Assembly (NCBI GenBank): GCA_965112735.1 | Contig: OZ218955.1 | Location: 558,001-622,000, forward strand | Direction: 5' to 3' | From: Phaeosaccion multiseriatum | Taxonomy: Eukaryota; Protista; Ochrophyta, other classes | Length of the DNA stretch: 64,000 nucleotides | Part shown: in pieces, positions 1,678 through 62,301 of the stretch | How positions within the stretch are numbered: the stretch's first letter is position 1 | Layout of the letters: each line of letters begins with the position of its first letter | Program-made: the position numbers and the translations under genes | The notes under the pieces: model-generated | Told to the model about the DNA's origin: nothing | The model's input: the letters and a program-made list of their open reading frames with translations, nothing else | Databases searched by the model: none

Positions 1678-3413
1678 TGAGTGGGCGTGCGATGGGTATA
1701 AGCAGGTGCCCGATGTAGACAGAAGGCACGCGCTGCCAGCAGATGGTGAGGGCGAGCAGGGCTTGGAAGGGGGCTTTCACCCGAGCAGGCAGCCCAGTAG
1801 GTGATTCACCAGGGCACACATACAGCGCTCTTAATCAACCCACCAAGGAAAATTTACGAATATACGTACGATTGAAGTGCGTGAGTTGTGTGTCCAATCT
1901 GTGACCCCAGGTCGTGTCCGCAACGGGAGGAGAGAAAAAAAGAAAAAATGAACAATTATAATTGCTTTCTCCTCGTTCTCTCTTTCCACCTCTTCCCCCT
2001 GCTCACCGCGGGGTTCTCCATCGTCTCGACGTGTCCCCCCTGCGCCTCCAGCGCCTGTGAATGGAGCAGAGGAAGCACCTTGAGGAGCGGAACCGCGCTT
2101 ATCATCTGTCGAGCGGAGGCGAAGGGAGCGAAGGGGGGCGATGATGAGAGCGACGATACGAACGTGGACCATGATGAGAGCGCTGGAAAAGTAAGTATTT
2201 TCTCTCGCTCTCGAATGGTTGAAACGATACTGAAGTATTTAGCGCCTCGCTCTCCGTACTCCTTCCCCTTCAGCTCGGTCGCCTCTACCACTTCCTCCAT
2301 CCTGGAGGGAAGAAAGCGCTTCCGCCCTCGCCGAAGAAGCTCTACGTGCCGCGATCCTCCCTCCAACCAAAGTCTTGGGCCTCCTGGCAACAGCAGCAAC
2401 AGCAGCAGCAACAGCCCAAAGACTACCTGAGCAGGGCGCGAGAGGCCCGGGAGAGGGTATTTCGTGTGAGCGGGCTGCAGGCCGACATCCGACGGCAGAG
2501 AGCCGCGGTGGAGCGGGCGGAGCATCAAGCGTGGGCTCTCTTCCTCAAGATCCGGGACTTTAACAAGGAGTTGGAGAGGATCAAGCACCACCCTGACGCC
2601 ACCGCGGAGGAGGGCGGTGAATACCTACGACGAGTCAAGTACCTGCAGTATATCATCGGCGAGCTGGAGGATGAGATGCGCCTCCGAGAGAGGCAGTCCC
2701 AGGTGGGCAAGTACAAAGTGAGCCTGCTTATGGAGAAGCTGCTCCGGGTCGGAGGGAGGCCTTTCGAAGACTACCTTTGACCTTCGACGTTGCTGAGCGA
2801 GCTCTCTATGGCCCCTCTGCTGGCTGACGGCGCGGGCTCGACAAGAGTCTCAACTCTAAGGTAACACATGTACGAAAGCCTCGGTAGGCACCTCAGCAAG
2901 CCTCACATCTAAGCAGTGAGTTCCATTCGATGAGAGCGATTAGAGCATGACTATAGTCGCGGCGGAAGAGAAAGGTAAGGGGGGCTCAGGCGGGAGGAGT
3001 GCGTCGCGCACGGGGTTGCGGGAAGACAGGACACGGTCGGAGTGTGGGTAGCTACCAGCCAGTGTCCGACTGTGGCGGCTGCGCTGCGGCTTTACGTATC
3101 GGAACAAGCCATCGTGAAGCCGCTCAGCAGGAGTGAAGCAACAAGGTGGTGTGATTCCTTGTGAAGTACCTGACGACGCTTGGAAGGAAGGAGGCTCTCA
3201 ATGAGCCGGGGAGTGCTGCCTGCCCATTTGGTAGGGATTGAGCGTTCGCTACGGTAGGCACGCACGCACGCACGCACACACAAGTAGTTGGCGACTAAAG
3301 CATCGATGCAATAATTGTTAAAAGAGACACGCGCATGGAAGAAGAAGCCCCTCACGGCGCGTGTGTGCGAGAGCGGGGTAGTCAACGGGGCGAGAGCGAC
3401 ACTTTTTGCGTGG
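1678..3413 (+). repeat. Left arm of ~1.73 kb inverted repeat (partner 60587-62301)
   Basis: tgagtgggcgtgcgatggg... through ...actttttgcgtgg is the near-identical reverse complement of 60587-62301; the ORF track shows mirrored 144, 211, 63 and 62 aa ORFs. Confidence 0.95.
1948..2780 (+). CDS. Two-exon ~249-aa protein with signal peptide/possible bipartite plastid-targeting sequence and C-terminal coiled coil; function unknown
   Basis: Exon 1 1948-2190 (MNNYNCFLLVLSFHLFPLLTAG-FSIV...), intron gtaagt...cccttcag 2191-2273, exon 2 2274-2780 in phase 0 with the QQQQ/coiled-coil ORF 2346-2780. Confidence 0.7.
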
Positions 3414-4025
3414 CGCTGGACTCGTACTGACTCGATGACTCTGCATGCAGTGTGTATGTGGCCATGCGTCTCCGACTCACGTTCATCTCGCTGTCCCCCT
3501 CGTGAAAGACATTGGTTAGAGCCTGAAACGTGCAGAACGACTAGAGATGGGAGCAAAAAAAAAGCCTGAGCGCCTGAGGGGATGGGAGACAGGAAAGGGG
3601 GGCTGCCTGCGCCTGGGCCATTGACATATTCTGGTATTCTGGTCCCTATGCCTCTGACGCCTCTTCGTGAAAGAATGGAAGGAAAGAGGCAGAGCGCGGC
3701 ACACTATTGAGAGAGCTCCCGCTCCCCTTCGCGTGTAGCTTTGCACGCTTCGGGGAGGAGGGGTTCGTCTTGAGTCAGGCAGGGGCCTACTTGGTTCTCC
3801 CCCGCGCGCCTCACCTAGCTAGCGCTGCTTTGGCCAAAGACGGGGAGAGGAAAGGGGCGGGCGACAGCCTACGCTATTGGAACGGCCTCTCCCTTCTTCC
3901 CTTCTAGTGCGGCGCGCCTGAGGGAGTGAGGGATCGTCTTGAGTCAGGGAGGCGCGAGCTTGATTCCCCCCTTCGCTCTCCTCCTACGTCAACTTTGGCG
4001 GGGGGGGGAGACTGTTCCTCTCGGT

Positions 4026-5704
4026 ATGGAGCGGGTGATATCCCCAGAGGTAAGAGGTAAATGCCTGTAAATTGTGGATACTTTATCTCATGATAGCACA
4101 CAGACAACGGTACAAACGAGAACGGTGCGAGCGGAGGCGGTGACTTGCGAGAATGAAGCCTCTGATCCGGGGCGGAGTATGCTGCTACACTTCGACACAG
4201 CTGATGCGAGTCGCATTGACCTCAAGCCCTTCGAATGGGATCCCTCTTCTCCACTGCTTCCGAACCCCCCCCCCCCCCCTTTTTACATCAGGCGCGGCGC
4301 CTCTCCCAGGCTCTCCAGAGAAATGAGAACTTCTCAACAGTGAGAGCGCTGGTTAGGAAGCTCGTCGCGAAGCACGGCAAAGCGAGCTTAGATCATCCTA
4401 TTGACGAGGACGGTGGGACGGCTATGATTTGGGCTGCGGGAGAGGACCGGCGGGATGTCGTGGACCTCCTGCTGCAGGAAGGGGCGTCATTCAGTATCGG
4501 GGTAGGAGCGCGGGGGAACACACCATTGACAGAAGCTTGCGTGAGCGGACACGATCACATGGTGAGGCGGCTTTTGGACGCCGGAGCCGCCGTTGACCAA
4601 CCCAATCGCGAAGGGGTGACGCCTCTGCTTATGGCTGCCCAGAATGGGCATTCCACAACTGTGCAGAAGCTCCTGTTGGCGCAGCCCGATGTCAACGCAG
4701 CCGCGACTAGGGGAGTGACTGCGATATGGATGGCCTCTCAAAATGGGCACACCTCCATCGTAGAGCAGCTCATCTCAGCCCAAGCGGACGTGAACAAAGC
4801 CGACGATGAAGGACAAACTCCACTCCTGATAGCGTCTGGACAAGGCCATGTAAGAGTGATACAGCAGCTCATCTCAGCCCAAGCGGACGTGAACAAAGCC
4901 GACGATGAAGGAACAACTCCACTCTGTATGGCTTCTAGACAAGGCCATGTAAGTGTGGTACAGCAGCTCCTCAGGGCCCACGCCGAGATCGAAAAGGCTA
5001 ACAAGCATGGCTTCACCCCGCTTTATGTAGCCTCGGAATTCGGGCATGCCTCTGTTGTGCAGCAGCTTCTCGATGAGCATGCCAGCATAAATGCAAAGAG
5101 TATGGAGGCTGTCACTCCCCTCATGGCCGCGGCTTCCAAAGGACACTTGGCTGTGGTAGAGAAGCTCTTGGCTGCAGGAGCGAACGTCGACTCTATTGGC
5201 CCCGATGGCTGGACTTCTTTTCACTGGGCCGTTCAAGAGGGACACGATGCCGTGGCAAAGCGCCTTCTTGCGGCGGGAGCAAGGGTGGATACAGTGAACA
5301 TCGATGGCGCTTCACCTCTCCACCATGCTGCGAAGAAAGGGCTCGAGGCAATCGTCGCTCGTCTCATCTCTGCCGGATCTCCCATCGATGCCACGACGTC
5401 GATGGGCGCCACCCCTCTACTTGCTGCCATCGACAGAGGCCATCACGGCATTGCCCTGCAGCTCCTCTCGGCCGATGCCTCGGTGGACAAGGCCTTCGCT
5501 GTGGCACGGCGGCTCCAACTGGGCCCAGACATTGAGCAGCGAATCAAGGACGAGGCAGCGGCCTTCTTCCGGTCCCAAAGCGCGTTGGACCTCATGCGTA
5601 GGAGCGACCCGACGTTCGGCAAGGAGAGCAGGACCTTGCCGCTTGAGAGGCCCTGGAGGGTTGGAAGCGAGACATGGGAGAGCATGGCGGAGGAGATGGG
5701 CTGA
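4026..5704 (+). CDS. Ankyrin array copy 1 (11 repeats, ~478 aa)
   Basis: Micro-exon 4026-4049 (MERVISPE) + exon 4292-5704; 33-aa G-x-T-P-L-x-x-A-x-x-x-G-H repeats. Confidence 0.88.
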
Positions 5705-7443
5705 AAGCCCTGAGCGAGGTGGGGCGTGGGTGGAGGACGTGGGAGGGGCGTTTCGAGGGACCTGAAGCCGTGTTGCCGCAGGTAGAGAGACGGGCGAGCA
5801 AGAGGGGAGGGAGAGCGAGGCGGGAGTGTGGACGTGTCGTGTAAGGGCTTAGTGGGCCACTGAGGCAAATGCGCTGTGCGAGGATGGCACCTCATGTCTG
5901 GTCGAATGACTCCAGGATAGGACGGCTGTGCCTCCAAAGCGCCGCCGCGGTAGGATAGGACAGGAGGAACGTGAATGCAACTTTGGCTGGTTGCTCTCCG
6001 CGCTTGACATGATGTCTGTGTGTCTGTGCGGTGTCGTGCCGGATGGCACTTGCAGTAGGACCGCACAGCAGGGGATATAGCCAGCTCGCTCGCTCCGAGT
6101 GGCGGTGACCTCTTCTTGTCAGGCTTTTGCACGTGTGTACTGCCAACTCAGTACGTGGGAAGAAAGTAGCGAAGCAAGGCCTGGAGAAGAGCCGCTTTGT
6201 TTTGCCTAGCCTATGGACTCGTGGCCCATGGGGGCGAGCGGCTTCGGCGACTGGCGCGAAGCAGCTCAAGTGTAGGTCGCAATAGTGCAGTATGATAAGT
6301 CTAAGAAAGGGAATGCAGCAAACCCCCGAACAAGAGATGCTCTGCTGCTGGTTGAGAAGGTGGTGGAATAGTTGCCTTTCCTACCTCTGGGCTGATAACA
6401 TCGCAAGTCCCCCGTGCCCCTACCTTTTTTTTTCTCTAATTCTCTCCTTCCTTATGCCTCTAGCCACCCCTCCCCATATCCCTCCAACTACGTAACTCAG
6501 TGTGCGCCCTTGGTCATAATATCCCTTACCTCCGCCACAAGAAGGCGGCCGAGACCTCCTCCCTCGGCCCCTTTGCTGGTGCTGCTGCAGGTGCTGCTGT
6601 ATCGCCAACTGCTGTGGCTGCTGCGAGGGCTGTGAGTAGGGCGGCGGGCCCCCCGTTTTGAAGGAGGAGTTGCGCGAGTCCGAGGAAGCAGCGGGATCTT
6701 CTCCAAAAGGGTGCGGTGACTGAAGCGACGACGAGTGCAGAGGCTCTGAAAACTGCACATGATAATTAGTATGTAAGATGAAGAGGAGAGAGAGGGGGGG
6801 GGAGGAGGAAGCAAGAAATGGGTTGCCTACGCCTGGGCCATTGACATATTCTGGGCCCCTTCCCTCTGACGCCTCTTCACTTGCAGGCGTGAAAAAAAAA
6901 AGGATTGAATTGAAGGACGGCGAGGGGCAAAGTGCGGCAAGCCGCTGAGAGAGCCCTTCTTCCTCTTTGCGTGTGGTGGTGCGCCCTTGGGGGGCGGGGG
7001 GAGGGGTTCGTCTTGAGACAGGCAGGAGCCGGCTTGATTCTCCCCCGCTCCTCACCGAGCTAGCGCTGCTTTGGCCTCCTTACATAGCGAGTAAAGAGAA
7101 GGGTCGTGATAGGAAGAGTGAGGGACCGCCCTCCTCTCTCTTCGCTTGTAGTGGGACATACCTGGGGGAGGAGGGGCTCCCTTGAGTCAGGCAGGCAGCG
7201 GCCTGCTTGGTTGGTTCCCCCCGGTCCTGACCCAGCTCCAACGCTGCTTTGGCCTCCTACAAGACGTAGAGGAAAGCGGCTGGCGAGAGACAACGCTATT
7301 GGAACGGCCCCTTCCTTCTTCCCTTCTAGTGGGGCGCGCCTGAGGGAGTGGGGAATCGTCTTGAGTCAGGGAGACGCCGGCTTGATTCCCCCCTTTCGCT
7401 GTCCTCCTACTTCAACTTTGGGGGGAAGGAGAGATTTCTCATC

Positions 7444-9026
7444 ATGGAGCCGGTGATATCCCCCGAGGTATGAGCAGAGTGTATATAAATGGTGGATGTT
7501 TTAGCTCATGACAGCACAGAGACGGCGGTACAAAAAGGACGGTGCGAGCGGAGGAGGTGACTCGCGAGAATGAAGCCTCTGATCCGGGGCGGAGTACGCT
7601 GCTACACTTCGACACAGCTGATACGAGTCGCATTGACCTCAAGCCCTTCGAATTGTATCCCTCTTCTCCACTGCTTTTGACCCCCCCCCCCTTTTACCTC
7701 AGGCGTGGCGCCTCTTCCACGCTCTCCAGAGAAATGAGAACTTCTCAACAGTGAGGGCGCTGGTTACGAAGCTCGTCGCGAAGCACGGCAAAATGAGTTT
7801 AGATCATCCTATTGACAAGCACGGTAACACTGCTATGATGTGGGCGGCGGCAGACGACCGGCGGGATGTCGTGGACCTCCTGCTGCAAGAAGGGGCGTCC
7901 TTCAGTATCGGGGGAGGAGCACAGGGGAACACGCCATTGATACAAGCTAGCGCGAGAGGACACCATCACATTGTGAGGCGGCTGTTGGACGTCGGAGCCG
8001 CCATTGACCAACCCAATCCCGAACGTGCGACGCCTCTGCATGTGGCTGCCCAGAATGGGCATTCCACAACTGTGCAGAAGCTCCTGTTGGCGCAGCCCGA
8101 TATCAACGCAGCCGCGACGAGTAGGGGAGTGACTCCGATATGGATGGCCTCTCAGAATGGGCACACCTCCATCGTAGAGCAGCTCATCTCAGCCCAAGCG
8201 GACGTGAACAAAGCCGACAATAGAGGACAAACTCCACTCCGAATAGCGTCAGAAAATGGCCATTGGAGAGTGGTACAGCAGCTCCTCAGCAGGGCCCACG
8301 CCATGATGGAAAAGGCTGATGACGAAGGCCGGACTCCACTTTGTGTAGCCTCTTTCTTTGGGCATGCCTCTGTTGTGCAGCAGCTTCTCGATCACCATGC
8401 CAACATGAATGCCAAGAATGACACGGATACACCTCCACTAATGCTGGCGGCTTTCAAAGGACACTTGGCTGTGGTAGACAAGCTAGCTCGTGGCTGAAGG
8501 AGCGGACGTCGATTCTATTGGCCCCGATGGCTCGACTTCTCTTCAAGGGGCTGCTCAAGAGGGACACGAGGCTGTGACGAAGCGCCTTCTCTCTGCTGGA
8601 GCAAGGGTAGACACAGTGACCAACGATGGCGTAACAGCTCTCTTCCTTGCTGCAAGGAATGGGCACGAGGCAGTCGTCGCTCATCTCATCTCTGCCGGAT
8701 CTCCCATCGATGCCCCGCTTTCGACGGGCTTCACCCCCCTCCTTTCTGCCATCTTCAAAGGCCATCACGGCATTGCACTGCAGCTCCTTTCGGCTGATGC
8801 CTCGGTGGACAAGGCCTTGGATGTGGCACGGCGACACCAACTGGGCCCCGACATTGAGCAGCGAATCAAGGACGAGGCAGCGGCCTTCTTCCGGTCCCAA
8901 AGCGCGTTGGACCTCATGCGTAGGAGCGACCCGACGTTCGGCAAGGAGAGCGGGACCTTGCCGCTGGAGAGGCCATGGAGTGTTGGAAGCGAGACATGGG
9001 AGAACATGGCGGAGGAGATGGGCTGA
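7444..9026 (+). pseudogene. Ankyrin array copy 2 (10 repeats), frameshifted
   Basis: Micro-exon 7444-7467 + exon from 7703; 4-bp duplication (aagctagctcgtggc) near 8485 splits ORFs 7751-8497 and 8490-9026. Confidence 0.82.
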
Positions 9027-10299
9027 AAGACCTGAGCGAGGTGGGGGGTGGGTGGAGTATGTGGGAGGGGCATTTCGAGGGACCTGAAGCCGTGTTGCCG
9101 CAGGTAGAGAGACGGGCGAGCGAGAGAGAGGGAAGAGAGCGAGAGGAGGGAGTGTGGACGTGTCGTGTAGGGGCTTAGTGGCCCACTGAGGCAAATGCGC
9201 TGTGCGAGGATGGCAACTCATGTCTGGTAGAATGACTCCAGGATAGGACTGCTGTGCATCCAAAGCGCCGCCGCGGTAGGATAGGACAGGAGGATCCGGA
9301 ATGCGACTTTGGCTGGTTGCTTCTCCGTGCTTGACATGATGTCTAAGTGTCTGTGCGTTGTCGTACCAGACTGCACTTGTAGTCAGACCGCAGCAGCAGG
9401 AGATATAGCCAGCTCGCCCGCTCCGAGTGGCGGTGAGCTTTTCTCGTCAGGCTTCTGCACGTGTGTACTGCCATCTCAGTACGTGGGAAGAAAGTAGTGT
9501 AGCAAAACTTTGCTTTGTCTGGCCTACGGACTCTTGGCCCACGGGGGCGAGCGGCTTAGGCGACTGGCGCGAAGCAGCTCAAGTATAGGCGCAATAGTTC
9601 AGTATGAAAAGTCTAAGAAAGGGAATGCAGCAAGCACCGAAACAAATGATGCTCTGCTGCTGGTTGAGAAGGTGGTGGAATAGTTGCCTTTTGTACCTCT
9701 GGGCTGATAACATCGCAAGTCCCCCGTGCCCGTACCATACGCCTCTAAGTTTATCCTTCCTTATGCCTCTAGCCACCCCTCCCCAAAAATTCAACTCAGT
9801 GTGCACCCTTGATCATCGTTTCCCTTATCTCCGCCGCGAGAGGAGGGCCGAGACCTCCTCCCTCTGCCCCTTTGCTGCTGCTGCAGGTGCCGCTGTATCG
9901 CCAACTGCTGTAGCTGCGGCGAGGGCTGCGAGTAGGGCAGCAGGCCCCCCTTTTTGAAGGAGGAGTTGCGCGAGTCCGAGGAAGCAGCGGCATCTCCAAA
10001 AGGGTGCGGTGAGTGGAGGGCCTCTGAAATCTGCACACGATAATTAATATGTAGGGTGAATATGAGAGATGAGCGTAGATATGCCCCCCCCCCCCTGGGC
10101 CTGAGGAAGCAAGAAATGGGCTGCCTACGCCTGGGCCATTGACATATTCTGGGCCCCTTGCGTCTGACACCTCTTCACTTGCTGGCGTGAAAGGATTGAA
10201 TTGAAGGACGGTGAGGGGCAAAGTGCGGCAAGCCGCTGAGAGAGCCCTTCTTCCTCTTTGCGTGTGGTGGTGCGCGCTTGGGGGGGGGGGGGAGGGGGT

Positions 10300-10700
10300 T
10301 CGTCTTGAGTCAGGCAGGGGCCGGCTTGGTTCTCCCCCGCTCCTCTCTGAGCTAGCGCTGCTTTGGCCTCCTGACACAGCGAGTAAAGAGAAGGGTCGTG
10401 AGAGGAAGAGCGAGGGACCGCCCTCCTCTCTCTTCGCTTGTAGTAGAACTTCCTTGGGGAGGAGGGTTTCCTTGAGTCAGGCAGCGGCCTGCTTGGTTGG
10501 TTCCCCCCGGTCCTGACCCAGCTCCAGCGCTGTTTTGGCCTCCTACAAGACGTAGAGGAGAGCGACTGGCGAGAGACAACGCTATTGGAGGGGCCTGTTC
10601 CTTCTTCCCTTCTACTGCGGCGCGCGCCTGAGGCAGTGGGGGATCGTCTTGAGTCAGGGAGGTGCCGGCTTGATTCCCCCCTTCGCTGTCCTCCTACTTC
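10300..10700 (+). promoter_or_regulatory. Triplicated ~170-bp upstream module, each with TGAGTCA (example from unit 3)
   Basis: TGAGTCA at 10306, 10473 and 10650 in the context cttgagtcagg..gcc.gcttg.tt.cccc; repeated in the other units with some substitutions. Confidence 0.45.
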
Positions 10701-10733
10701 AACATTGGGGGCAAGGGGAGACTGTTGCCCAGT

Positions 10734-12411
10734 ATGGAGCGGGCGATATCCCCCGAGGTATGAGCTGAGTGTATATAAATGGTAGATGTTTATCTCATGA
10801 CAGCACAGAGACAGCGGTACACACAAGGACGGTACGAGCGGAGGAGGTGACTCGCGAGAATGAAGCCTCTGATCCGGGGCGGAGTACGCTGCAAAGCTTC
10901 AATCCAGCTGATGCGAGTCGCATTGATCTCAAGCCCTTCGAATGGTATCCCTCTTCTCCACTGCTTCCGAACCCCCCCCCCCCCCTTTTTTACATCAGGC
11001 GCGGCGCCTCTCCCAGGCTCTCCAGAGAAATGAGAACTTCTCAACAGTGAGAGCGCTCGTTAGGAAGCTCGTCGCGAAGCACGGCAAAGCGAGCTTAGAT
11101 CATCCTATTGACGAGGACGGTGGGACGGCTATGATTTGGGCTGCGGTAGAGGGCCGGCGGGATGTCGTGGACCTCCTGCTGCAGGAAGGGGCGTCCTTCA
11201 GTATCGGGGGAGGAGAGCCGGGGAGCACGCCATTGATTGAAGCTAGCGCGAGAGGACACGATCACATGGTGAGGCGGCTGTTGGACGTCGGAGCCGCCGT
11301 TGACCAACCCAATCCCGAAGGGATGACGCCTCTGCTTATGGCTGCCCAGAATGGGCATTCCACAACTGTGCAGAAGCTCCTGTCGGCGCAGCCCGATGTC
11401 AACGCAGCCGCGACTAGGGGAGTGACTCCGATATGGATGGCCTCTCAGAATGGGCACACCTCCATCGTAGAGCAGCTCATCTCAGCCCAAGCGGACGTGA
11501 ACAAAGCCAACGATGAAGGAAGAACTCCACTCCTGATAGCGTCTGGACAAGGCCATGGGAGAGTGGTACAGCAGCTCATCTCAACCGAAGCGGACGTGAA
11601 CAAAACCGACAATAGAGGAAGCACTCCACTCCAGAATGCGTCTGCCGAAGGCCATGTAAGAGTGGTACAGCAGCTCCTCAGGGCCCACGCCGAGATCGAG
11701 AAGGCTGATGACGGAGGCTGGACTCCACTTTTTGTAGCCTCTATGCTCGGGCGTGCCTCTGTCGTGCAGCAGCTTCTCGATGAGCATGCCAGCATAAATG
11801 CAAAGAGTGTGGAGGCTGTCACTCCCCTCATTGCGGCGGCTGGGGGCGGACACTTGGCTGTGGTAGACAAGCTCTTGGCCGCAGGAGCGGACGTCAATTC
11901 TATTGGCCCAAATGGCTGGACTTCTCTTCACGCGGCCGCTCAACTGGGACACGACGCTGTGATGAAGTGCCTTCTCTCTGCGGGAGCAAGGGTGGACACG
12001 GTGACCAACGATGGCGTAACAGCTCTCTTCCTTGCTGTAAGGAGTGGGCACGAGGCAGTCGTCGCTCATCTCATCTCTGCCGGATCTCCCATCGATGCTC
12101 CGATTTCGATGGGCTCTACCCCTCTCCTTGCTGCCATCATCAATGGCCATCACGGCATGGCACTGCAGCTCCTCTCGGCTGATGCCTCGGTGGACAAGGC
12201 CTTCGCTGAGGCACGGCGACACCAACTGGGCACAGACATTGAGCAGCGAATCAAGGACGAGGCAGCGGCCTTCTTCCGGTCCCAAAGCGCGTTGGACCTC
12301 ATGCGTAGGAGCGACCCGACGTTCGGCAAGGAGAGCAGGACCCTGCCGCTGGAGAGGCCCTGGAGTGTTGGAAGCGAGACATGGGAGAGCATGGCGGAGG
12401 AGATGGGCTGA
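10734..12411 (+). CDS. Ankyrin array copy 3 (11 repeats, ~478 aa)
   Basis: Micro-exon 10734-10757 + exon 10999-12411. Confidence 0.88.
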
Positions 12412-44121: not shown

Positions 44122-44473
44122 CTTTGCTTATTCCACTGTTTGTGCTCTGTCGCCTTTGCTTTTAACCGTGAAGGCAAGGGACGGAGGAGTTTGAGGGGAG
44201 CAGGAGGAGAGACGAGAGAGAGAGAGACGATAAGAGAAGGAGAGAGACAAAGAGACAGAAGGTGAGAGAGGGAGGGAGAGCGGAAAGGAGAGGTAGGATA
44301 ATAATCGAGATCGGGCGGCAGTTTAAAGGGGTTTCCAGGGCTGGGGTGGTTCGCAGCACGTAGTATGCCAACGAATTAGTGCGCCCGATCGATCCTCCCA
44401 AGAGAAGGATGTTGGAAAATACTGATGGGTTCGAAGAGTATTAATTTAGTGTCGCCCCAGTAGGATAAGCAAT
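44122..44473. promoter_or_regulatory. Putative bidirectional promoter (352 bp)
   Basis: Lies between divergent ATGs at 44121 (-) and 44474 (+). Confidence 0.5.
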
Positions 44474-46638: not shown

Positions 46639-46683
<45 letters not shown>

Positions 46684-51849: not shown

Positions 51850-53429
51850 TCAGCTCATCTCCTCCGCCATGCTCTCCCATGTCTCGCTTCCAACACTCCA
51901 GGGCCTCTCCAGCGGCAAGGTCCTGCTCTCCTTGCCGAACGTCGGGTCGCTCCTACGCATGAGGTCCAACGCGCTTTGGGACCGGAAGAAGGCCGCTGCC
52001 TCGTCCTTGATTCGCTGCTCAATGTCGGGGCCCAGTTGGTGTCGCCTTGCCCCAGCGAAGGCCTTGTCCACCGAGGCATCAGCCGAGAGGAGCTGCAGTG
52101 CAATGCCTTGATGGCCATTGATGATGGCAGCAAGGAGAGGGGTGCCGCCGCTCGACGTCGTGGCATCGATGGGAGATCCGGCAGAGATGAGACGAGCGAC
52201 GATTGCCTCGAGCCCTTTCTTCGCAGCATGGTGGAGAGGTGAAGCGCCATCGATGTTCACTGTGTCCACCCTTGCTCCCGCCGCAAGAAGGCGCTTCGCC
52301 ACGGCATCGTGTCCCCCTTGAACGGCCCAGTGAAAAGAAGTCATCAAGCCATCGCGGCCAATAGAATCGACGTCCGCTCCTACAGCCAAGAGCTTCTCTA
52401 CCACAGCCAAGTGTCCTTTGGAAGCCGCGGCCATGAGGGGAGTCATATCCTCAATACTCTTTGTATTCATGTTGGCATGCTCATCGAGAAGCTGCTGCAC
52501 GACAGAGGCACGCCCGAGCATAGAGGCTACAAAAAGCGGGGTGCAGCCATCCTTGTTAGCCTTTTCGATCTCGGCGTGGGCCCTGAGGAGCTGCTGTATC
52601 ACTCTCCCATGGCCTTCTCTAGAAGCCATACAGAGTGGAGTTGTTCCTTCATCGTCGGCTTTGTTCACGTCCGCTTGGGCTGAGATGAGCTGCTCTACGA
52701 TGGAGGTGTGCCCATTCTGAGAGGCCATCCATATCGGAGTCACTCCCCTACTCGCGGCTGCGTTGACATCGGGCTGCGCCAACAGGAGCTTCTGCACAGA
52801 TTTGGAATGCCCATTCTCGGCAGCCACAAGCAGAGACGTCGCCCCGCGGAGATTGGGTTGGTCAGCGGCGGCTCCGGCGTCCAACAGCCGCCTCACCATG
52901 TGATGGTGTCCTCTCACGCAAGCTTCTGTCAATGGTGTGTTCCCCCGCGCTCCTCCCCCGATACTGAATGACGCCCCTTCCTGCAGCAGGAGGTCCACGA
53001 CATCCCGCCGGTCCTCTCCCGCAGCCAAAATCATAGCCGTCCCACCGTCCTCGTCAATAGGATGATCTAAGCTCGCTTTGCCGTGCTTCGCGACGAGCTT
53101 CCTAACCAGCGCTCTCACTGTTGAGAAGTTCTCATTTCTCTGGAGAGCCTGGGAGAGGCGCCGCGCCTGATGTAAAAAGGGGGGGGGGGGGGTTCGGAAG
53201 CAGTGGAGAAGAGGGATACCATTCGAAGGGCTTGAGATCAATGCGACTCGCATCAGCTGGATTGAAGCTTTGCAGCGTACTCCGCCCCGGATCAGAGGCT
53301 TCATTCTCGCGAGTCACCTCCTCCGCTCGTACCGTCCTTGTGTGTACCGCTGTCTCTGTGCTGTCATGAGATAAACATCCACCATTTATATACCTCAGCT
53401 CATACCTCGGGGGATATCGCCCGCTCCAT
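51850..53429 (-). CDS. Ankyrin array copy 11 (10 repeats, ~446 aa)
   Basis: Micro-exon 53429-53406 + exon 53166-51850; ends EEMS*. Confidence 0.88.
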
Positions 53430-55147
53430 ACTGAGCAAAAGTCTCCCCTTGCCCCCAAAGTTGAAGTAGGAGGACAGAGAAGGGGGGAATCAAGCCGGCA
53501 ACTCCCTGACTCAAGATGATCCCCCACTGCCTCAGGCGCGCGCCGCAGTAGAAGGGAAGAAGGAACAGGCCCCTCCAATAGCGTTGTCTCTCGCCAGTCG
53601 CTTTCCTCTACGTCTTGTAGGAGGCCAAAACAGCGCTGGAGCTAGGTCAGGAACGGGGGGAAACAACCAAGCAGGCCGCTGCCTGACTCAATAGAACCTC
53701 TCTCCCCACAGCGTGCACCACTGCAAGCGAAGAGAGAGGATGGCGGTCCCTCACTCTTCCTCTCACGACCCTTCTCTTTACTCGCTGTGTCAGGAGGCCA
53801 AAGCAGCGCTAGCTCAGAGAGGAGCGGGGGAGAACCAAGCCGGCCCCTGCCTGACTCAAGACGAACCCCCTCCCCCCCCCCCCCAAGCGCGCACCACTAC
53901 ACGCGAAGAGGAAGAAGGGCTCTCTCAACAGCTTGCCGCACTTTGCCCCTCACCGTCCTTCAACTCAATCCTTTTTTTTTTCACGCCTTGCAAGTGAAGA
54001 GGTCTCAGAGGGAAGGGGCCCAGAATATGTCAATGGCCCAGGCGTAGGCAGCCCATTTCTTGCTTCCTCAGGCCCAGGGGGGGGGGGGGCATATCTACGC
54101 TCATCTCTCATATTCACCCTACATATTAATTATCGTGTGCAGATTTCAGAGGCCCTCCACTCACCGCACCCTTTTGGAGAAGATGCCGCTGCTTCCTCGG
54201 ACTCGCGCAACTCCTCCTTCAAAAAGGGGGGCCTGCCGCCCTACTCGCAGCCCTCGCCGCAGCTACAGCAGTTGGCGATACAGCGGCACCTGCAGCAGCA
54301 GCAAAGGGGCAGAGGGAGGAGGTCTCGGCCCTCCTCTCGCGGCGGAGATAAGGGAAACGATGATCAAGGGTGCACACTGAGTTGAATTTTTGGGGAGGGG
54401 TGGCTAGAGGCATAAGGAAGGATAAACTTAGAGGCGTATGGTACGGGCACGGGGGACTTGCGATGTTATCAGCCCAGAGGTACAAAAGGCAACTATTCCA
54501 CCACCTTCTCAACCAGCAGCAGAGCATCATTTGTTTCGGTGCTTGCTGCATTCCCTTTCTTAGACTTTTCATACTGAACTATTGCGCCTATACTTGAGCT
54601 GCTTCGCGCCAGTCGCCTAAGCCGCTCGCCCCCGTGGGCCAAGAGTCCGTAGGCCAGACAAAGCAAAGTTTTGCTTCACTACTTTCTTACCACGTACTGA
54701 GATGGCAGTACACACGTGCAGAAGCCTGACGAGAAAAGCTCACCGCCACTCGGAGCGGGCGAGCTGGCTATATCTCCTGCTGCTGCGGTCTGACTACAAG
54801 TGCAGTCTGGTACGACAACGCACAGACACTTAGACATCATGTCAAGCACGGAGAAGCAACCCACCAACCATCGTATTTCCCATTCCTCCTGTCCTATCCT
54901 ACCGCGGCGGCGCTTTGGATGCACAGCAGTCCTATCCTGGAGTCATTCGACCAGACATGAGGTGCCATCCTCGCACAGCGCATTTGCCTCAGTGGCCCAC
55001 TAAGCCCCTACACGACACGTCCACACTCCCTCGTCGCTCTCCCTTCCCTCTCGCTCGCCCGTCTCTCTACCTGCGGCATCACGGCTTCAGGTCCCTCGAA
55101 ACGCCCCTCCCACATACTCCACCCACCCCCCACCTCGCTCAGGTCTT

Positions 55148-56732
55148 TCAGCCCATCTCCTCCGCCATGCTCTCCCATGTCTCGCTTCCAACACTCCAGG
55201 GCCTCTCCAGCGGCAAGGTCCTGCTCTCCTTGCCGAACGTCGGGTCGCTCCTACGCATGAGGTCCAACGCGCTTTGGGACCGGAAGAAGGCTGCTGCCAC
55301 GTCTTTGATTCGCTGCTCAATGTCTGGGCCCAGTTGGAGCCGCCGTGCCCCAGCGAAGGCCTTGTCCACCGAGGCATCAGCCGAGAGGAGCTGCAGTGCA
55401 ATGCCGTGATGGCCTCTGTCGATGGCAGCAAGTAGAGGGGTGGCGCCCATCGACGCCGTGGCATCGATGGGAGATCCGGCAGAGATGAGACGAGCGACGA
55501 TTGCCTCGTGCCCTCTCTGCGCAGCATAGCGGAGAGGTGAAGCGCCGTCGATGTCCACTGTGTCCACCCTTGCTCCCGCCGCGAGAAGGCGCTTCGCCAC
55601 GGCATCGTGTCCGTCTTGAACGGCCCAGTGAAGAGAAGTCAAGCCAGCGCGGCTAATACAATGGACCTCCGCTCCTGCAGCCAAGAGCTTCTCTACCACA
55701 GCCAAGTGTCCGCTCCCAGCCGCGGCCATGAGGGGAGTGACACCCTTCATACTCATTGTATTTATGCTGGCATGCTCATCGAGAAGCTGCTGCACAACAT
55801 AGGCATGCCCGAGGAAAGAGGCCATATGAAGTGGAGTCCGGCCTTGGTCATCAGCCTTGTCCACCTTGGCGTGGGCCCTGAGGAGCTGCTGTACCACTCT
55901 TACACGGCCCTTTGCTGACGCTATCAGGAGTGGAGTTCTTCCTCCATTTTCGGCTTTGTCCACGTCCGCTTGGGCTGAGATGAGCTGCTCTACGATGGAG
56001 GTGTGCCCATTCTGAGAGGCCACCCATATCGGAGTCACTCCCGTACTCGCAGCAGCTGCGTTGACATCGGGCTGCGCCAACAGGAGCTTCTGCACAGTTG
56101 TGGAATGCCCCTTCTGGGCAGCCATAAGCAGAGGCGTCGTCCCGTCGCGATTGGGTTGGTCAACGGCGGCTCCGACGTCCAACAGCCACGGCACCAAGTG
56201 ATCGTGTCCGCTCACGCAAGCTTCAATCAATGGCGTATTCCCCAACCCTCCTACCCCGATATTACTGAACAATGACGCCCCTTCCTGCAGCAGGAGGTCC
56301 ATGACATCCCGCCGGCCCTCTCCCGCAGCCCAAATCATAGCAGTGTTTCCGTGCTTGTCAATAGGATGATCTAAGCTTGCTTTGCCGTGCTTCGCGACGA
56401 GCTTCCTAACCAGCGCTCTCACTGTTGAGAAGTTCTGATTTCTCCCGAGAGCCTGGCAGAGGCGCTGCGCCTGATGGGAGAGGGAGGGGGGTTCAAAAGC
56501 AGTGGAGAAGAGGGATACAATTCGAAGGGCTTGAGGTCAATGCGACTCGCATCAGCTGTGTCGAAGTGTAGCAGCGTACTCCACCCCGCCGGATCAGAGG
56601 CTTCATTCTCGCGAGTCACCTCCTCCGCTCGCACCGTCCTTTTTGTACCGCCGTCTCTGTGCTGTCATGAGCTAAAACATCCACCATTTATATACACTCC
56701 GCTCATACCTCGGGTGATATCACCGGCTCCAT
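55148..56732 (-). CDS. Ankyrin array copy 12 (10 repeats, ~448 aa)
   Basis: Micro-exon 56732-56709 (MEPVISPE) + exon 56470-55148. Confidence 0.88.
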
Positions 56733-57301
56733 GATGAGAAATCTCTCCTTCCCCCCAAAGTTGAAGTAGGAGGACAGCGAAAGGGGGGAATCAAGCCGGC
56801 GTGACTCAAGACGATTCCCCACTCCATCAGGCGCGCCCCACTAGAAGGGAAGAAGGAAGGGGCCGTTCCAATAGCGTTGTCTCTCGCCAGCCGCTTTCCT
56901 CTACGTCTTGTAGGAGGCCAAAGCAGCGCTGGAGCTGGGTCAGGACCGGGGGGAACCAACCAAGCAGGCCGCTGCCTGACTCAAGGAAACCCCTCCTCCC
57001 CCAGGTATGTCCCACTACCAGCGAAGAGAGAGGAGGGCGGTCCCTCGCTCTTCCTATCACGACCCTTCTCTTTACTCGCTGTGTATGGAGGCCAAAGCAG
57101 CGCTAGCTCGGTGAGGAGCGGGGGAGAATCAAGCCGGCTCCTGCCTGTCTCAAGACGAACCCCTTCCCCCGCCCCCCAAGCGCGCACCACCACACGCAAA
57201 GAGGAAGAAGGGCTCTCTCAACGGCTTGCCGCACTTTGCCCCTCGCCGTCCTTCAATTCAATTGTGTCAGAGGGAAGGGGCCCAGAATATGTCAATGGCC
57301 C

Positions 57302-57585
57302 AGGCGTAGGCAGCCCATTTCTTGCTTCGGCCCAGGGGGAGGGGATATCTACGCTCATCTCTCATATTCATCTTGCATATTATTTATCGTGTGCAGTTTT
57401 CAGAGCCTCTGCACTCGTCGCTTCAGTCACCGCACCCTTTGGAAGGCGTAGGCAGCCCATTTCTTGCTTCGGCCCAGGGGGATGGGATATGTACGCTCAT
57501 CTCTCATATTCATCTTACATATTAATTATCGTGTGCAGTTTTCAGAGCCTCTGCACTCGTCGCTACAGTCACCGCACCCTTTGGA
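57302..57585. repeat. 142-bp local tandem duplication in unit spacer
   Basis: aggcgtaggcagcccatttc...gcaccctttgga at 57302-57443 and 57444-57585. Confidence 0.85.
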
Positions 57586-58555
57586 GAAGATGTCGCTGCT
57601 TCCTCGGACTCGCGCAACTCCTCCTTCAAGACAGGGGGCCCGCCGCCCTGCTCGCAGCCCTCGCCGCAGCTACAGCAGTTGGCGATACAGAAGCACCTGC
57701 AGCAGCAGCAACGGGGCCGAGGGAGGAGGTCTCGGCCGTCCTCTCGCGGCGGAGATAAGGGAAACGATGATCAAGGGTGCACACTGAGTTGAATTTTTGA
57801 GCTAGAGGCATAAGGAAGGAGAGGCTTAGAAGCGTATGGTAGGGGCATGCGGGACGTGCGATGTATTCAGCCCAGAGGTACGAAAGGCAATTTATTCCAC
57901 CACCCTTTCAACAGCGCAACAGAGCATCTCTTGTGTGAAGGCTTGCTGCATTCCCTTTCTTAGACTTATCATTTTGCTCCTACACTTGAGCTGCTCCGCG
58001 CCAGTCGCCTAAGCCGCTCGCCCCCATGGGCCACGAGTCCATAGGCTAGGCAAAGCAAAGCCTCTCTTCTCCGGGCCTTGCTTCGCTACTTTCTTCCCAC
58101 GTACTGAGATGGCAGTACACACGTGCAAAAGCCTGACAAGAAGAGCTCACCGCCACTCGGAGCGGACGAGCCGGCTATATGCCCTGCTGCTGCGGTCATA
58201 GTACAAGTTCCATCCTGCACGACAACGCACAGACACACAGACAACATGTCAAGCACGGAGAAGCAACCAGCCAAGGTCGTATTTCCCATTCCTCCTATCC
58301 TATCCTACCGCGGCGGTGCTTTGGAGGCACAGCAGTCCTATCCTCGAGTCATTCGACCAGACATGAGGTGCCATCCACGCACAGCGCATTTGCCTCAGTG
58401 GCCCACTAAGCCCTTACGCGACACGTCCACACTCCCTCCTCGCTCTCTTCCCTCTCTCTTGCTCGCCCGTCTCTCTACCTGCGGCAACACGGCTTCAGGT
58501 CCCTCGAAACGCCCCTCCCACATACTCCACCCACCCCCCACCTCGCTCAGGTCTT

Positions 58556-60133
58556 TCAGCCCATCTCCTCCGCCATGCTCTCCCATGTCTCGCTTCCAAC
58601 ACTCCAGGGCCTCTCCAGCGGCAAGGTCCTGCTCTCCTTGCCGAACGTCGGGTCGCTCCTACGCATGAGGTCCAACGCGCTTTGAGATCGGAAGAAGGCT
58701 GCTGCCTCGTCCTTGATTCGCTGCTCAATGTCGGGGCCCAGTTGGAGCCGCTGTGCCCCAGCGAAGGCCTTGTCCACCGAGGCATCAGCCGCGAGGAGCT
58801 GAAGTGCAGTGCCGTGATGGCCATTGATGATGGCAGCAAGGAGGGGGGTCAGGCCGCTCGACGTCGGGGCATCGATGGGAGATCCGGCAGAGATGAGATG
58901 AGCGACGACTGCCTCGTGCCCATTCTCCGCCGCAAGGTGGAGAGGTGAAGCGCCGTCGATGTCCACTGTGTCCACCCTTGCTCCCGCCGCGAGAAGGCGC
59001 TTCGCCACGGCATCGTGTCCGTCTTGAACGGCCCAGTGAAGAGAAGTCAAGCCATCGCGGCTAATACAATGGACCTCCGCTCCTGCAGCCAAGAGCTTCT
59101 CTACCACAGCCAAGTGTCCGCTCCCAGCCGCGGCCATAAGGGGAGTGACACCCTTCATACTCATTGTATTTATGCTGGCATGCTCATCGAGAAGCTGCTG
59201 CACAACAGAGGCATGCCCGAGGAAAGAGGCCATATGAAGTGGAGTCCGGCCTTGGTCATCAGCCTTGTCCACCTTGGCGTGGGCCCTGAGGAGCTGCTGT
59301 ACCACTCTTACACGGCCCTTTGCTGACGCTATCAGGAGTGGAGTTCTTCCTCCATTTTCGGCTTTGTCCACGTCCGCTTGGGCTGAGATGAGCTGCTCTA
59401 CGATGGAGGTGTGCCCATTCTGAGAGGCCATCCATATCGGAGTCACTCCCGTACTCGTAGCTGCGTTGACATCGGGCTGCGCAGACAGGAGCTTCTGCAC
59501 AGTTGTGGAATGCCCGATCTCGGCAGCCATCAGCAGAGGCGTCGCCCCTTCACGATTGGGTTGGTCAATGGCGGCTCCGACGTCCAACAGCCACGGCACC
59601 AAGTGATCGTGTCCGCTCACGCAAGCTTCAATCAATGGCGTGGTCCCCAACGCTCCTACCCCGATATTACTGAAGGACGCCCCTTCCTGCAGCAGGAGGT
59701 CCACGACATCCCGCCGGCCCTCTCCCGCAGCCCAAATCATAGCAGTGTTTCCGTGCTTGTCAATAGGATGATCTAAGCTTGCTTTGCCGTGCTTCGCGAC
59801 GAGCTTCCTAACCAGCGCTCTCACTGTTGAGAAGTTCTGATTTCTCCCGAGAGCCTGGCAGAGGCGCTGCGCCTGATGGGAGAGGGAGGGGGGTTCAAAA
59901 GCAGTGGAGAAGAGGGATACAATTCGAAGGGCTTGAGGTCAATGCGACTCGCATCAGCTGTGTCGAAGTGTAGCAGCGTACTCCACCCCGCCGGATCAGA
60001 GGCTTCATTCTCGAGTCACCTCCTCCGCTCGCACCGTTCTCGTTTGTACCGTTGTCTGTATGCTATCATGAGATTAAGTATCCATGAACTACACGCATTT
60101 GCCTCATACCTCTGGGGATATCACCCGCTCCAT
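58556..60133 (-). CDS. Ankyrin array copy 13 (10 repeats, ~446 aa)
   Basis: Micro-exon 60133-60110 (MERVISPE) + exon 59872-58556. Confidence 0.88.
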
Positions 60134-60586
60134 GCCGAGGAACAGTCTCCCCCCCCCCCCCAAAGTTGACGTAGGAGGAGAGCGAAGGGGGGAATAAACA
60201 CGGCGCCTCCCTGACTCAAGACGGTCCCCCACTCCGTCAGGCGTGCCGCACTAGAAGGGAAGAAGGAAGAGGCCGTTCCAATAGCGTAGTCTCTCGTCAG
60301 CCGCTTTCCTCTACGTCTTGTAGAAGGCCAAAGCAGCGCTGGAGCTAGGTCAGGACCGGGGGGAACCAACCAAGCAGGCCGCTGCCTGACTCAATAGAAC
60401 CTCTCCTCCCCACAGCGTGCACCACTCACGCGAAGAGGAATGATGTCTTTCTCAACAGCTTCCCACACTCTGCCCTTTTTGCCCTTCCTTCGCTTCTATC
60501 CCTTCCGCCTGCAAGTGAAGAGGCGTTAGAGTATGTTTCCCCTCCTTTCAGAAGGGGGGCAGCGAGATGAACATTTCAGTGCGTGT

Positions 60587-62301
60587 CCACGCAAAAAGTG
60601 TCGCTCTCGCCCCGTTGACTACCCCGCTCGCACACACGCGCCGTGAGGGGCTTTTTCTTCCATGCGCGTGTCTCTTTTAACAATTATTGCATCGATGCTT
60701 TAGTCGCTAACTACTTGTGTGTGCGTGCGTGCGTGCGTGCGTGCCTACAGCGAACGCTCAATCCCTTACGAATGGGCAGGCAGCACTCCCCGGCTCATTG
60801 AGAGCCTCCTTCCTTCCAAGCGTCGTCAGGTACTTCACAAGGAATCACACCACCTTGTTGCTTCACTCCTGCTGAGCGGCTTCACGGTGGCTTGTTCCGA
60901 TACGTAAAGCCGCAGCGCAGCCGCCACAGTCGGACACTGGTAGCTACCCACACTCCGACCGTGTCCTGTCTTCCCGCAACCCCGCGCGCGACGCACTCCT
61001 CCCGCCTGAGCCCCCCCTACCTCTCTCTTCCGCCGCGACTATAGTCATGCTCTAATCGCTCTCATCGAATGGAACTCACTGCTTAGATATGAGGCGTGCT
61101 GAGGTGCCTACTGAGGCTTTCGTACATGTGTTACCTTAGAGTTGAGACTCTTGTCGAGCCCGCGCCGTCAGCCAGCAGAGGGGCCATAGAGAGCTCGCTC
61201 AGCAACGTCGAAGGTCAAAGGTAGTCTTCGAAAGGCCTCCCTCCGACCCGGAGCAGCTTCTCCATAAGCAGGCTCACTTTGTACTTGCCCACATGGGACT
61301 GCCTCTCTCGGAGGCGCATCTCATCCTCCAGCTCGCCGATGATATACTGCAGGTATTTGACTCGTCGTAGATATTCACCGCCCTCCTCCGCGGTGGCGTC
61401 AGGGTGGTGCTTGATCCTCTCCAACTCCTTATTAAAGTCCCGGATCTTGAGGAAGAGAGCCCACGCTTGATGCTCCGCCCGCTCCACCGCGGCTCTCTGC
61501 CGTCGGATGTCGGCCTGCAGCCCGCTCACACGAAATACCCTCTTCCGGGCCTCTCGCGCCCTGCTCAGGTAGTCTTTGGGCTGTTGCTGCTGCTGTTGCT
61601 GCTGTTGCCAGGAGGCCCAAGACTTTGGTTGGAGGGAGGATCGCGGCACGTAGAGCTTCTTCGGCGAGGGCGGAAGCGCTTTCTTCCCTCCAGGATGGAG
61701 GAAGTGGTAGAGGCGATCGAGCTGAAGGGGAAGGAGTACGGAGAGCGAGGCGCTAAATACTTCAGTATCGTTTCAACCATTCGAGAGCGAGAGAAAATAC
61801 TTACTTTTCCAGCGCTCTCATCATGGTCCACGTTCGTATCGTCGCTCTCATCATCGCCCCCCTTCGCTCCCTTCGCCTCCGCTCGACAGATGATAAGCGC
61901 GGTTCCGCTCCTCAAGGTGCTTCCTCTGCTCCATTCACAGGCGCTGGAGGCGCAGGGGGGGCACGTCGAGACGATGGAGAACCCCGCGGTGAGCAGGGGG
62001 AAGAGGTGGAAAGAGAGAACGAGGAGAAAGCAATTATAATGTTCATTTTTTTTCTCTTCCCGTGACACGACCTGGGGTCACAGATTGGACACACAACTCA
62101 CGCACTTCAATGTACGTACATTCGTAAATTTTCCTTGGTGGGTTGATTAAGAGCGCTGTATGTGTGCCCTGGTGAATCACCTACTGGGCTGCCTGCTCGG
62201 GTGAAAGCCCCCTTCCAAGCCCTGCTCGCCCTCACCATCTGCTGGCAGCGCGTGCCTTCTGTCTACATTGGGCACCTGCTTACCCATCGCACGCCCACTC
62301 A
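60587..62301 (-). repeat. Right arm of ~1.73 kb inverted repeat (partner 1678-3413)
   Basis: Reverse complement match with few SNPs and indels. Confidence 0.95.
61215..62046 (-). pseudogene. Duplicate of the 1948-2780 gene with a 1-bp deletion at codon 3
   Basis: atgaacattataattgc here vs atgaacaattataattgc on the left; exons 62046-61805 and 61721-61215. Confidence 0.6.

Follow-up and report, generated by a model that had tools for sequence, protein, structure and literature searches.

Within the 64-kb stretch of DNA analysed here (the window), two blocks of ankyrin-repeat genes face each other across a core, and the question that this locus raises is whether its mirrored layout is a device for reshuffling genes or the trace of a past duplication. 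The DNA was taken from a single assembly. We conclude that a tandem array of two-exon ankyrin-repeat genes has probably undergone an inverted segmental duplication, which left a palindrome whose spacer measures 12 kb. Inverted segmental duplications, or palindromes, of tandem gene families are an already known kind, to which this locus adds a member; it combines a tandem ankyrin array with an inverted duplication of that array in which the polarity of the event can still be read.

The layout was examined by self-BLAST, which confirmed the opposed ankyrin blocks and 1.7-kb inverted arms around a unique core that a preliminary description of this DNA had proposed. The arms matched in inverted orientation with 97.2% identity over 1737 nt; there were 29 mismatches in 1714 aligned sites (1.69% divergence), plus indels, and the arm pair was the only match between the left and right flanks. 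Inside the arms, a 3.3-kb periodic array was found at about 3723–38772 on the + strand and at 50804–60439 on the − strand. It comprises 13 ankyrin units of about 3.3 kb each, 10 on + and 3 on −, all directed inward at the core. Units follow each other head to tail in each block with a period of 3.29–3.51 kb, and identity between inverted units of the two blocks was 87–93%, in alignments of up to 4.7 kb. The core had no large match elsewhere in the 64-kb window and is therefore a unique spacer. The locus thus has the marks of a palindrome: inverted arms similar along their length, a unique spacer, and breakpoints that show the copying. The features are collected in Table 1.

Table 1. Features of the ankyrin locus, in window coordinates (for units: ATG/exon 2 start/stop)
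Feature	Position	Strand	Basis or remark
TLC/NTT-type ATP/ADP transporter gene, 3' end; unique left flank	1..1332	+	Pfam PF03219
Left arm, inverted copy; begins with orphan fragment of the right-flank ankyrin gene's last codons	1678..3413	+	self-BLAST, boundary alignment
+ array of 10 ankyrin units, U01–U10	3723..38775	+	self-BLAST, stop positions, exon models
U01	4026/4292/5704	+	
U02	7444/7703/9026	+	frameshifted
U03	10734/10999/12411	+	
U04	14123/14389/15801	+	
U05	17721/17999/19312	+	
U06	21067/21330/22643	+	
Insertion, 2.9 kb, in U07 intergenic part	23676..26569	.	perfect 21-bp terminal inverted repeats
U07	27133/27395/28810	+	
U08	30518/30796/32109	+	
U09	33826/34085/35397	+	frameshifted
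U10	37094/37356/38771	+	
Unique core (spacer)	38772..50806	.	self-BLAST
Core multi-exon gene, transcribed	about 40.4–42.6 kb	−	
Core Ser/Gly/acidic low-complexity ORF	43294–44121	−	
Low-complexity ORF, putative gene	ends at 51068	+	no Pfam match
T11, natural downstream flank of U11	50804..51849	−	
− array of 3 ankyrin units, U11–U13, source side	51850..60439	−	all intact
U11	53429/53166/51850	−	
U12	56732/56470/55148	−	
U13	60133/59872/58556	−	
Right arm, original region upstream of array; outer 21 nt = end of flanking ankyrin gene	60587..62301	−	self-BLAST, boundary alignment
Different ankyrin gene, last exon (ORF); unique right flank	62280..63191	−	Pfam Ank / Ank_2

Ankyrin repeats were detected by Pfam in the array units. 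All 13 copies share a common exon structure and frame, each with its own upstream region, exon 1 and intron, and 11 are intact, the exceptions being the frameshifted U02 and U09. The types of the 5' parts run A B C D E C D E B D along the + arm and A B C along the − arm from the outside in. This mirrored order of 5'/intron types had been claimed before, and it stands for the pairs 1/13, 2/12 and 3/11: MERVISPE was restricted to copies 1 and 13 and MEPVISPE to copies 2 and 12, and CCTACGTCAAC likewise marked copies 1 and 13 alone. Types B and C, however, are not exclusive to their pairs, as the 20-mer marker of copies 2/12 recurs in copy 9 (33901) and the 17-mer marker of copies 3/11 recurs in copy 6 (21224). 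No match to the 20-mer, the 17-mer or CCTACGTCAAC would be expected by chance. The EEMS ending was, as proposed, present only in copies 10 and 11, with different serine codons (AGT vs AGC).

Logan short-read contigs were used: three runs, all of one sample, were DNA-like, and a fourth contained spliced contigs. Contig placement covered 5991 letters, with 38772 as the sole inner junction checked. This junction, between copy 10 and the core, was bridged by same-sample short-read contigs, and the contigs showed multi-copy depth. The U10 intron (37118–37355) was matched exactly by a spliced contig of run X5 (GT..AG, 238 skipped), and the ankyrin genes are transcribed and spliced. The ratio dN/dS was 1.06 in the whole ankyrin part vs 0.36 in the tail, and residue variation, with positions counted from the T of TPL, peaked at −4, −3, −1, +7 and +8. 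The pattern is DARPin-like, with a constant framework and variation focused on beta-turn and first-helix face positions; the five peak positions are those randomised in DARPins. In an Atlas search the C-terminal tail gave ankyrin leads only, all sub-threshold, and an exact look-up of five window proteins found none in the collection.

The direction of copying was read from the boundaries. The right arm starts within the coding end of the flanking ankyrin ORF, the translation of which terminates in EWACDG and a stop, while the left arm holds an orphan fragment of that gene alone, preceded by unrelated AT-rich DNA. At the inner ends, U11 runs on into a downstream segment of about 1 kb and then into unique DNA, and the homology of U10 ends about 4 nt past its stop codon. 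This downstream segment (T11 type) follows U01–U09, U12 and U13 within the arrays and is missing after U10. Because the right arm begins inside the last codons of a gene, U11 has its natural flank and U10 is truncated, the left block is to be read as an inverted copy of the right one, which is the source.

The arms are not alleles, since the genes on their outer sides are unrelated. On the left, PF03219 matches lie in three ORFs and reach model position 489 of 491; this transporter region has no match in the right flank. Left-arm ORFs gave no match in a Pfam scan, and tRNA and Rfam scans found nothing. The insertion near U07 holds (AGGG)n, about 581 copies. One zf-C3HC4_3 match was obtained among 102 core ORFs, and a re-scan of 30 ORFs failed to place it.

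Mirrored non-coding parts differ by 1.98% (U02/U12) and 2.78% (U03/U11), close to the divergence of the arms, and together with the boundaries this argues for a single inverted duplication. Some features at the outer end fit this less well. The two sides cannot be aligned over the 300 nt that separate the arm from the first unit, and the 5' parts of U01 and U13 differ by 7.3%, significantly more than the arms, so extra events have taken place at that end. This outer-end divergence counts against a single-event history.

The array itself is apparently older than the duplication. In the 5' tree each − copy falls in a separate clade with + copies, (U01,U13) with support 92/94, (U12,(U02,U09)) with 100/99 and (U03,U06,U11) with 96/99. 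Clades D and E stand on stems of 0.047–0.066, and since these far exceed the arm divergence, the array would predate the duplication. Expansion of the + arm from three units only was rejected, types D and E being far older than the arm divergence. U04/U07/U10 and U05/U08 are 98–100% alike, and growth of the + arm is probably younger than the duplication.

The exon 2 tree, with (U01,U11) at 95/95 and (U09,(U12,U13)) at 100/100, conflicts with the 5' tree, and segment trees of unit parts disagree with strong support. Runs tests gave p<0.001 (97–131 shared variable sites per run), and dS between U03 and U11 was 0.114 in the ankyrin part vs 0.028 in the N-terminal part. Judged from these patterns, the copies are clearly recombinant mosaics. 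One period and conflicting segment trees are the signature of a tandem family in which unequal crossing-over and gene conversion are at work. As proof of conversion between the arms, however, the runs tests were rejected, since descent from the duplication plus within-arm exchange can also give most of the shared tracts. A mismatch-free U03/U11 tract of 438 nt has p of about 1e-5 under even divergence and 0.007 at the arm rate, and because it is unlikely under even divergence it hints that conversion between the arms took place later, an event for which a purely passive history has no need. The topology (U08,(U03,U11)) also points to later exchange, but unit loss from the − arm would account for it as well. 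Beyond this tract and this topology, nothing points to later arm-to-arm exchange.

We infer the following order of events. The array would first have expanded head to tail on the − strand, in the interval from the flanking ankyrin gene to the core, and each repeat unit would have carried about 1 kb of downstream DNA along. Later, a reverse copy would have been set down 12 kb away, adjoining the NTT gene. The copied stretch would have begun in the last codons of the flanking gene, taken in the upstream region of 1.7 kb and the array, and ended about 4 nt beyond the innermost stop codon. After the duplication, unequal crossing-over may have altered copy number in the arms; young, near-identical D, E and C units would have been gained on +, and D and E units lost on −, or never copied back. 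Gene conversion would have passed patches of the ankyrin-coding parts between copies, and binding-face residues would have diversified. The inverted homology would make the core invertible by ordinary non-allelic homologous recombination (NAHR), probably at a low, unprogrammed rate.

Can the locus then act as a homology-driven shufflon, as had been suggested? The proposed geometry is right: the copies converge and share exon structure and frame, and crossover between a + and a − copy would invert the interior, swap 3' halves and shift copies without loss of DNA. Inverted homology is abundant, with 169 exact inverted matches of at least 60 nt, 50 of at least 100 nt and a longest of 438 nt; every crossover product would be in frame; the copies are mosaic and variable at binding positions, and the mismatch-free U03/U11 tract suggests some exchange between arms. 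However, a reciprocal crossover leaves no new similarity behind, so nothing in one sequence records an inversion, or could. It is origin and not flipping that explains the mirror order, since the boundaries show one inverted duplication. Mosaicism is equally explained by within-arm exchange, and arm-to-arm identity is mostly just 88–93%. Specific sites are lacking, and among 102 core ORFs (at least 75 aa) and the arm and flank ORFs Pfam found no family of recombinases, integrases or transposases, in line with the earlier observation that no recombinase is visible. Furthermore, flipping would not switch expression, because every copy is supplied with a 5' exon and an upstream region of its own. 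The earlier interpretation is therefore supported only in part, and we regard it as very unlikely that, within a clone, frequent flipping of the core and the inner copies makes chimeric ankyrin genes for diversity. There is an equally small chance that the opposed arrays are a recombinase-free eukaryotic shuffling device driven by frequent mitotic crossovers and conversions between + and − copies, which would flip the core and reassort the halves of ankyrin genes with variable binding faces; if they were, many versions of the ankyrin repertoire would coexist in one clonal population of the alga. By its layout, the locus is rather a putative passive substrate for homologous inversion, which could flip by ordinary recombination.

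The inverted duplication was also weighed against an assembly artefact, in which either the inverted duplication is spurious or two haplotypes or two loci have been fused within the repeats. Assembly is difficult across a 2.3-kb microsatellite and across 3.3-kb repeats whose local identity reaches 100%, the short-read contigs give different letters at 38681 and 38702, and all DNA runs come from one sample. But arms that differ by 1.7% plus indels, and units that differ by 7–12%, are not the fold-back of one molecule, and the flanking genes are unrelated. The strand switches only across 12 kb of unique DNA, with its left junction bridged by short-read contigs, and the orphan gene fragment at the start of the left arm marks a real breakpoint. 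An artefact is accordingly improbable. The chance is slighter still that the opposed blocks arose by plain inversion of part of a one-way array, or that the inverted terminal arms, which bracket 57 kb, are the 1.7-kb terminal inverted repeats of a giant transposon. Inversion would not duplicate the arm or the gene fragment. A giant transposon was rejected: there is no target-site duplication at 1678/62301, as the preliminary description had noted, no transposase domain was found in the scanned ORFs, and the right arm is merely intergenic DNA behind a resident gene.

Read as an inverted duplication, the locus shows cleanly, and in datable form, how a recognition-type gene family that evolves fast is rearranged in the genome of a little-studied alga. 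Its breakpoints still reveal which block is the copy, and the mirrored units provide an internal clock of about 2% for later unit gains, losses and conversion patches. It is a likely place for inversion polymorphism, which is relevant to assembly quality control and to recombination suppression around the NTT gene and core genes. No new mechanism is revealed on present evidence.

Bacterial shufflons use an Rci-type site-specific recombinase, short specific sites and one expressed gene with a constant 5' part. Several invertible segments here would likewise exchange protein 3' parts, but the recombinase, the specific sites and the constant 5' part are absent; instead of one 5' part with alternative 3' segments there are 13 copies with 5' parts of their own. 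In the sap system of Campylobacter fetus, the cassettes diverge from a single promoter, which is carried by the invertible piece between them. Inversion of these S-layer cassettes is homologous and largely RecA-dependent (cited in PMC5634654). The ankyrin locus resembles sap in its opposed paralogous cassettes with shared homology that need no site-specific recombinase. However, its genes converge, with 3' ends facing the core and each with its own 5' end, where sap has one promoter between divergent cassettes. In NAHR between inverted segmental duplications, a general eukaryotic mechanism with examples cited in PMC8327919, crossover of inverted paralogues flips an interval and makes hybrid copies, exactly as the preliminary description envisaged; such inversions are known as a mutational side effect rather than a system, and the present locus is read from one assembly. 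Primate X/Y palindromes carry ampliconic gene families and undergo gene conversion between their arms and spacer inversion by NAHR (PMC8327919, PMC8600007), and NAHR between palindrome arms inverts spacers in about half of primate species comparisons (PMC8327919). Arm identity is 88–97% here and >99% in the primate palindromes; homogenisation of the sex-chromosome type (above about 99%) is not seen, with 1.7% mismatch in the arms, 7–12% in the units and identical tracts only locally. The arms here are themselves tandem arrays, one longer than the other (10 vs 3 units), the host is an alga, the locus is not known to lie in a sex-chromosome context, and both conversion and inversion would be putative. 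Like the primate palindromes, the locus has inverted arms with a multi-copy gene family around a unique, gene-bearing spacer, homology that would suffice for intrachromatid NAHR, and hints of patchy arm-to-arm exchange.

The layout was resolved by comparing the window with itself. A unit of about 3.3 kb forms a head-to-tail row of ten copies on the plus strand (U01–U10) and of three on the minus strand (U11–U13, numbered left to right), and the two blocks oppose each other across a unique core, towards which all the genes point. A pair of inverted arms brackets both blocks and the core; nowhere else do the two ends of the window match. The opposed blocks, inverted arms and unique core of the preliminary description were therefore borne out, and the mirror architecture is confirmed. 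The DNA is eukaryotic; its G+C content is 58% and introns are of the GT..AG kind. Minor repeats were also seen: a 43-nt sequence in three tandem copies immediately past the transporter (NTT) gene (1314–1443), a 142-nt sequence in two copies in the intergenic part of U12 (57302–57585), and (ACAT)n of about 74 copies (62894–63188), probably intronic, within the right-flank ankyrin ORF.

Positions of the main features of the locus
Feature	Position	Strand	Remarks
TLC/NTT ATP/ADP transporter gene, 3′ end	left of left arm
Inverted arms	1678–3413 and 60587–62301		97.2% identity over 1737 nt
Plus block	~3723–38772	+	U01–U10
Core	38772–50806
Minus block	50804–60439	−	U11–U13
Separate ankyrin gene	right of right arm	−	ORF end at 62280
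5′/intron type A	U01, U13
5′/intron type B	U02, U09, U12
5′/intron type C	U03, U06, U11
5′/intron type D	U04, U07, U10
5′/intron type E	U05, U08
99-bp duplication sites	4760–4969 (U01), 11467–11676 (U03), 14857–15066 (U04), 27866–28075 (U07), 37824–38033 (U10)
2.9-kb insertion	23676–26569		U07 only; perfect 21-bp terminal inverted repeats
Multi-exon core gene, transcribed	40400–42650	−	spliced contig with CT..AC joints
Core gene exons, approximate	42539–42642, 42054–42168, 41006–41106, 40575–40698	−
Low-complexity ORF (Gly, Gln, Pro runs)	49431–51068	+	final ~87 codons within repeat unit

It is unlikely that this layout is an assembly artefact. The arms differ from each other by substitutions and indels, the two outer flanks hold unrelated genes, and the strand switches solely across unique DNA, the left junction of which is bridged by short-read contigs from two sequencing runs (X2, 38595–39118; X4, 38738–39118). 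Furthermore, an orphan gene fragment at the left arm is a genuine breakpoint mark. The summed word depth of the unit was 10–30 times that of the core, a value compatible with many copies but, by the tool's own warning, not a copy number. Separately, positions 38681 and 38702, A and T in the window, are G and C in each of the three DNA-like runs from the sample behind the assembly, including the contig bridging U10 and the core; the discrepancy may come from an error in polishing, or from a graph bubble that was settled in favour of other copies.

The 5′/intron region of the units falls into five types. Read from the outside in, their order is A B C on the minus arm and A B C D E C D E B D on the plus arm. 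The sequence markers listed in the preliminary description were all found in place, and the mirror pairing of types that it proposed (U01/U13, U02/U12, U03/U11) is present; however, it missed the recurrence of B at U09 and of C at U06. The ending EEMS is indeed limited to the two innermost copies, U10 and U11 (codons AGT and AGC). In the tree of the 5′ segment, the three minus copies sit in three separate, well-supported clades, each together with plus copies, and never form one group.

The ends of the blocks indicate which of them is the copy. The start of the right arm overlaps the final seven codons and the stop of the ankyrin ORF beside it, while the left arm starts with the same 20-odd letters, preceded on the NTT side by AT-rich DNA of unrelated sequence. 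At the inner ends, what differs is the DNA of about 1 kb that the units have downstream of their genes; past U11 this continues into unique core DNA, whereas the homology of U10 ends about 4 nt past the stop codon. Natural context is found at both ends of the minus block and at neither end of the plus block. These two boundaries agree: the plus block is the inverted copy, made in reverse from a stretch that began at the end of the flanking gene and reached the stop of the innermost gene in the array. At the boundaries of the copy, no target-site duplication was found, in line with the earlier statement that no terminal one was visible.

The mismatch rates of the arms (1.69%), of the U02/U12 5′ part (1.98%) and of U03/U11 from intergenic DNA through the N-terminal coding part (2.78%) are consistent with a single duplication. 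The divergence of U01/U13 is higher (7.3%) and about 300 nt between the arm and the first unit is unalignable across the mirror, reflecting further changes at the outer end. Between the type clades the stems measure 0.03–0.07 substitutions per site, which argues that the types predate the duplication. The source array may originally have had over three kinds of unit, D and E being lost later, or D and E may have come from elsewhere. Within D and within E, non-coding parts are 98–100% alike, so that the copies of each of these types are probably younger than the duplication and record growth of the plus arm, seemingly by blocks such as C-D-E.

Each unit carries one gene in three parts: a coding exon 1 of 24 nt (ME[RP][VA]IS[PS]E or MQRVISSE), an intron of 235–254 nt, starting with GTA[AT]G and with a pyrimidine tract ahead of CAG, and a large exon 2. 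In run X5, one spliced contig lacks precisely the intron predicted for U10 (37118–37355, GT..AG), indicating that the ankyrin family is transcribed and spliced. X5, which the tool labelled ‘DNA?’, behaves as RNA, since four CT..AC joints are seen in the minus-strand core gene too. Eleven of the 13 copies are intact (445–479 aa). The frame is broken by a 4-nt insertion near 8481 in U02 and by a 1-nt deletion near 34411 in U09, both type B copies of the plus arm; that of U12, the type B copy of the minus arm, is intact. Five copies have one additional 33-aa ankyrin repeat through the 99-bp internal duplication, which is absent from the other eight and whose distribution is at odds with the 5′ types.

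Pfam matches in the unit proteins were to ankyrin repeats only. The non-ankyrin ends, ~50 residues at the N terminus and ~85 at the C terminus, are nearly constant among copies; the C-terminal ~85 residues (5450–5704 in U01, and the same part of each copy) are nearly identical throughout, have no Pfam family, and gave only sub-threshold leads in an Atlas search. The mean dN/dS among copies was 1.06 over the whole ankyrin part, exceeding 1 in 35 of 55 pairs, and that of the tail was 0.36. Variable residues lie at −4, −3, −1, +7 and +8 counted from the T of the TPL motif; in designed ankyrin binders, randomisation is applied to these sites.

The nearest neighbour of a copy shifts along the unit and the segment trees conflict, with exon 2 pairing U01 with U11 (95/95) and U09 with U12 and U13 (100/100). 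Mirrored pairs with 95–100% identity in their non-coding DNA show only 78–91% in the ankyrin-coding part. Synonymous divergence is raised there too (U03/U11 dS 0.114; N-terminal part, 0.028), showing that this part was overwritten from other copies and not only selected. Plus and minus copies share runs of 97–131 consecutive variable sites, far beyond permutation. Such runs do not establish exchange between the arms, as common descent through the duplication, together with exchange inside an arm, yields the same picture. A mismatch-free U03/U11 tract of 438 nt (p ~1e-5 if mismatches are evenly spread, 0.007 with the rate of the arms) and the recovered topology (U08,(U03,U11)) point to later exchange, although the topology could alternatively come from loss of units in the minus arm.

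In the core, ORFs across the multi-exon gene had no Pfam match, and its introns contain (GT)n-type repeats. One of 102 core ORFs matched the RING finger family zf-C3HC4_3 (E 2.7e-6); its source was not located among 30 re-scanned core ORFs. Many core ORFs are Cys/Val-rich translations of GT repeats. The low-complexity ORF contains a 46-nt repeat in six copies (49480–49749), and Pfam found neither an ankyrin nor an FN3 domain in it. The U07 insertion is flanked on both sides by TGGAGG, is rich in CTAGGCC palindromes, and contains (AGGG)n of about 581 copies (23964–26286); it resembles a non-autonomous DNA transposon carrying a giant microsatellite.

The core would be invertible in mechanical terms, given 169 exact inverted matches of at least 60 nt (50 of at least 100 nt and 6 of at least 200 nt) and the common frame and structure of the copies. 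A reciprocal crossover, however, would leave no mark in a sequence read once. The geometry and substrate for the homology-driven ‘shufflon’ proposed earlier are present. Domain searches of the 102 core ORFs and of the arm and flank ORFs found no recombinase, integrase or transposase, agreeing with the earlier remark that no recombinase is visible; scans found no tRNA or known RNA family; and neither a constant 5′ part common to the copies nor a single promoter was found. Nothing indicates a dedicated inversion system, and the shufflon, a reading that follows from the geometry, is only a possibility.

The best account of the locus is that a tandem array of ankyrin genes with a variable binding face underwent inverted segmental duplication. 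The stretch copied would have run from the flanking-gene end to the innermost stop codon, with gain and loss of units and patchy conversion afterwards. NAHR between palindrome arms causes frequent spacer inversion on evolutionary time, and orientation differs between species in about half of primate X-palindrome spacers (PMC8327919). The structure described here is of a known kind, in a new place.
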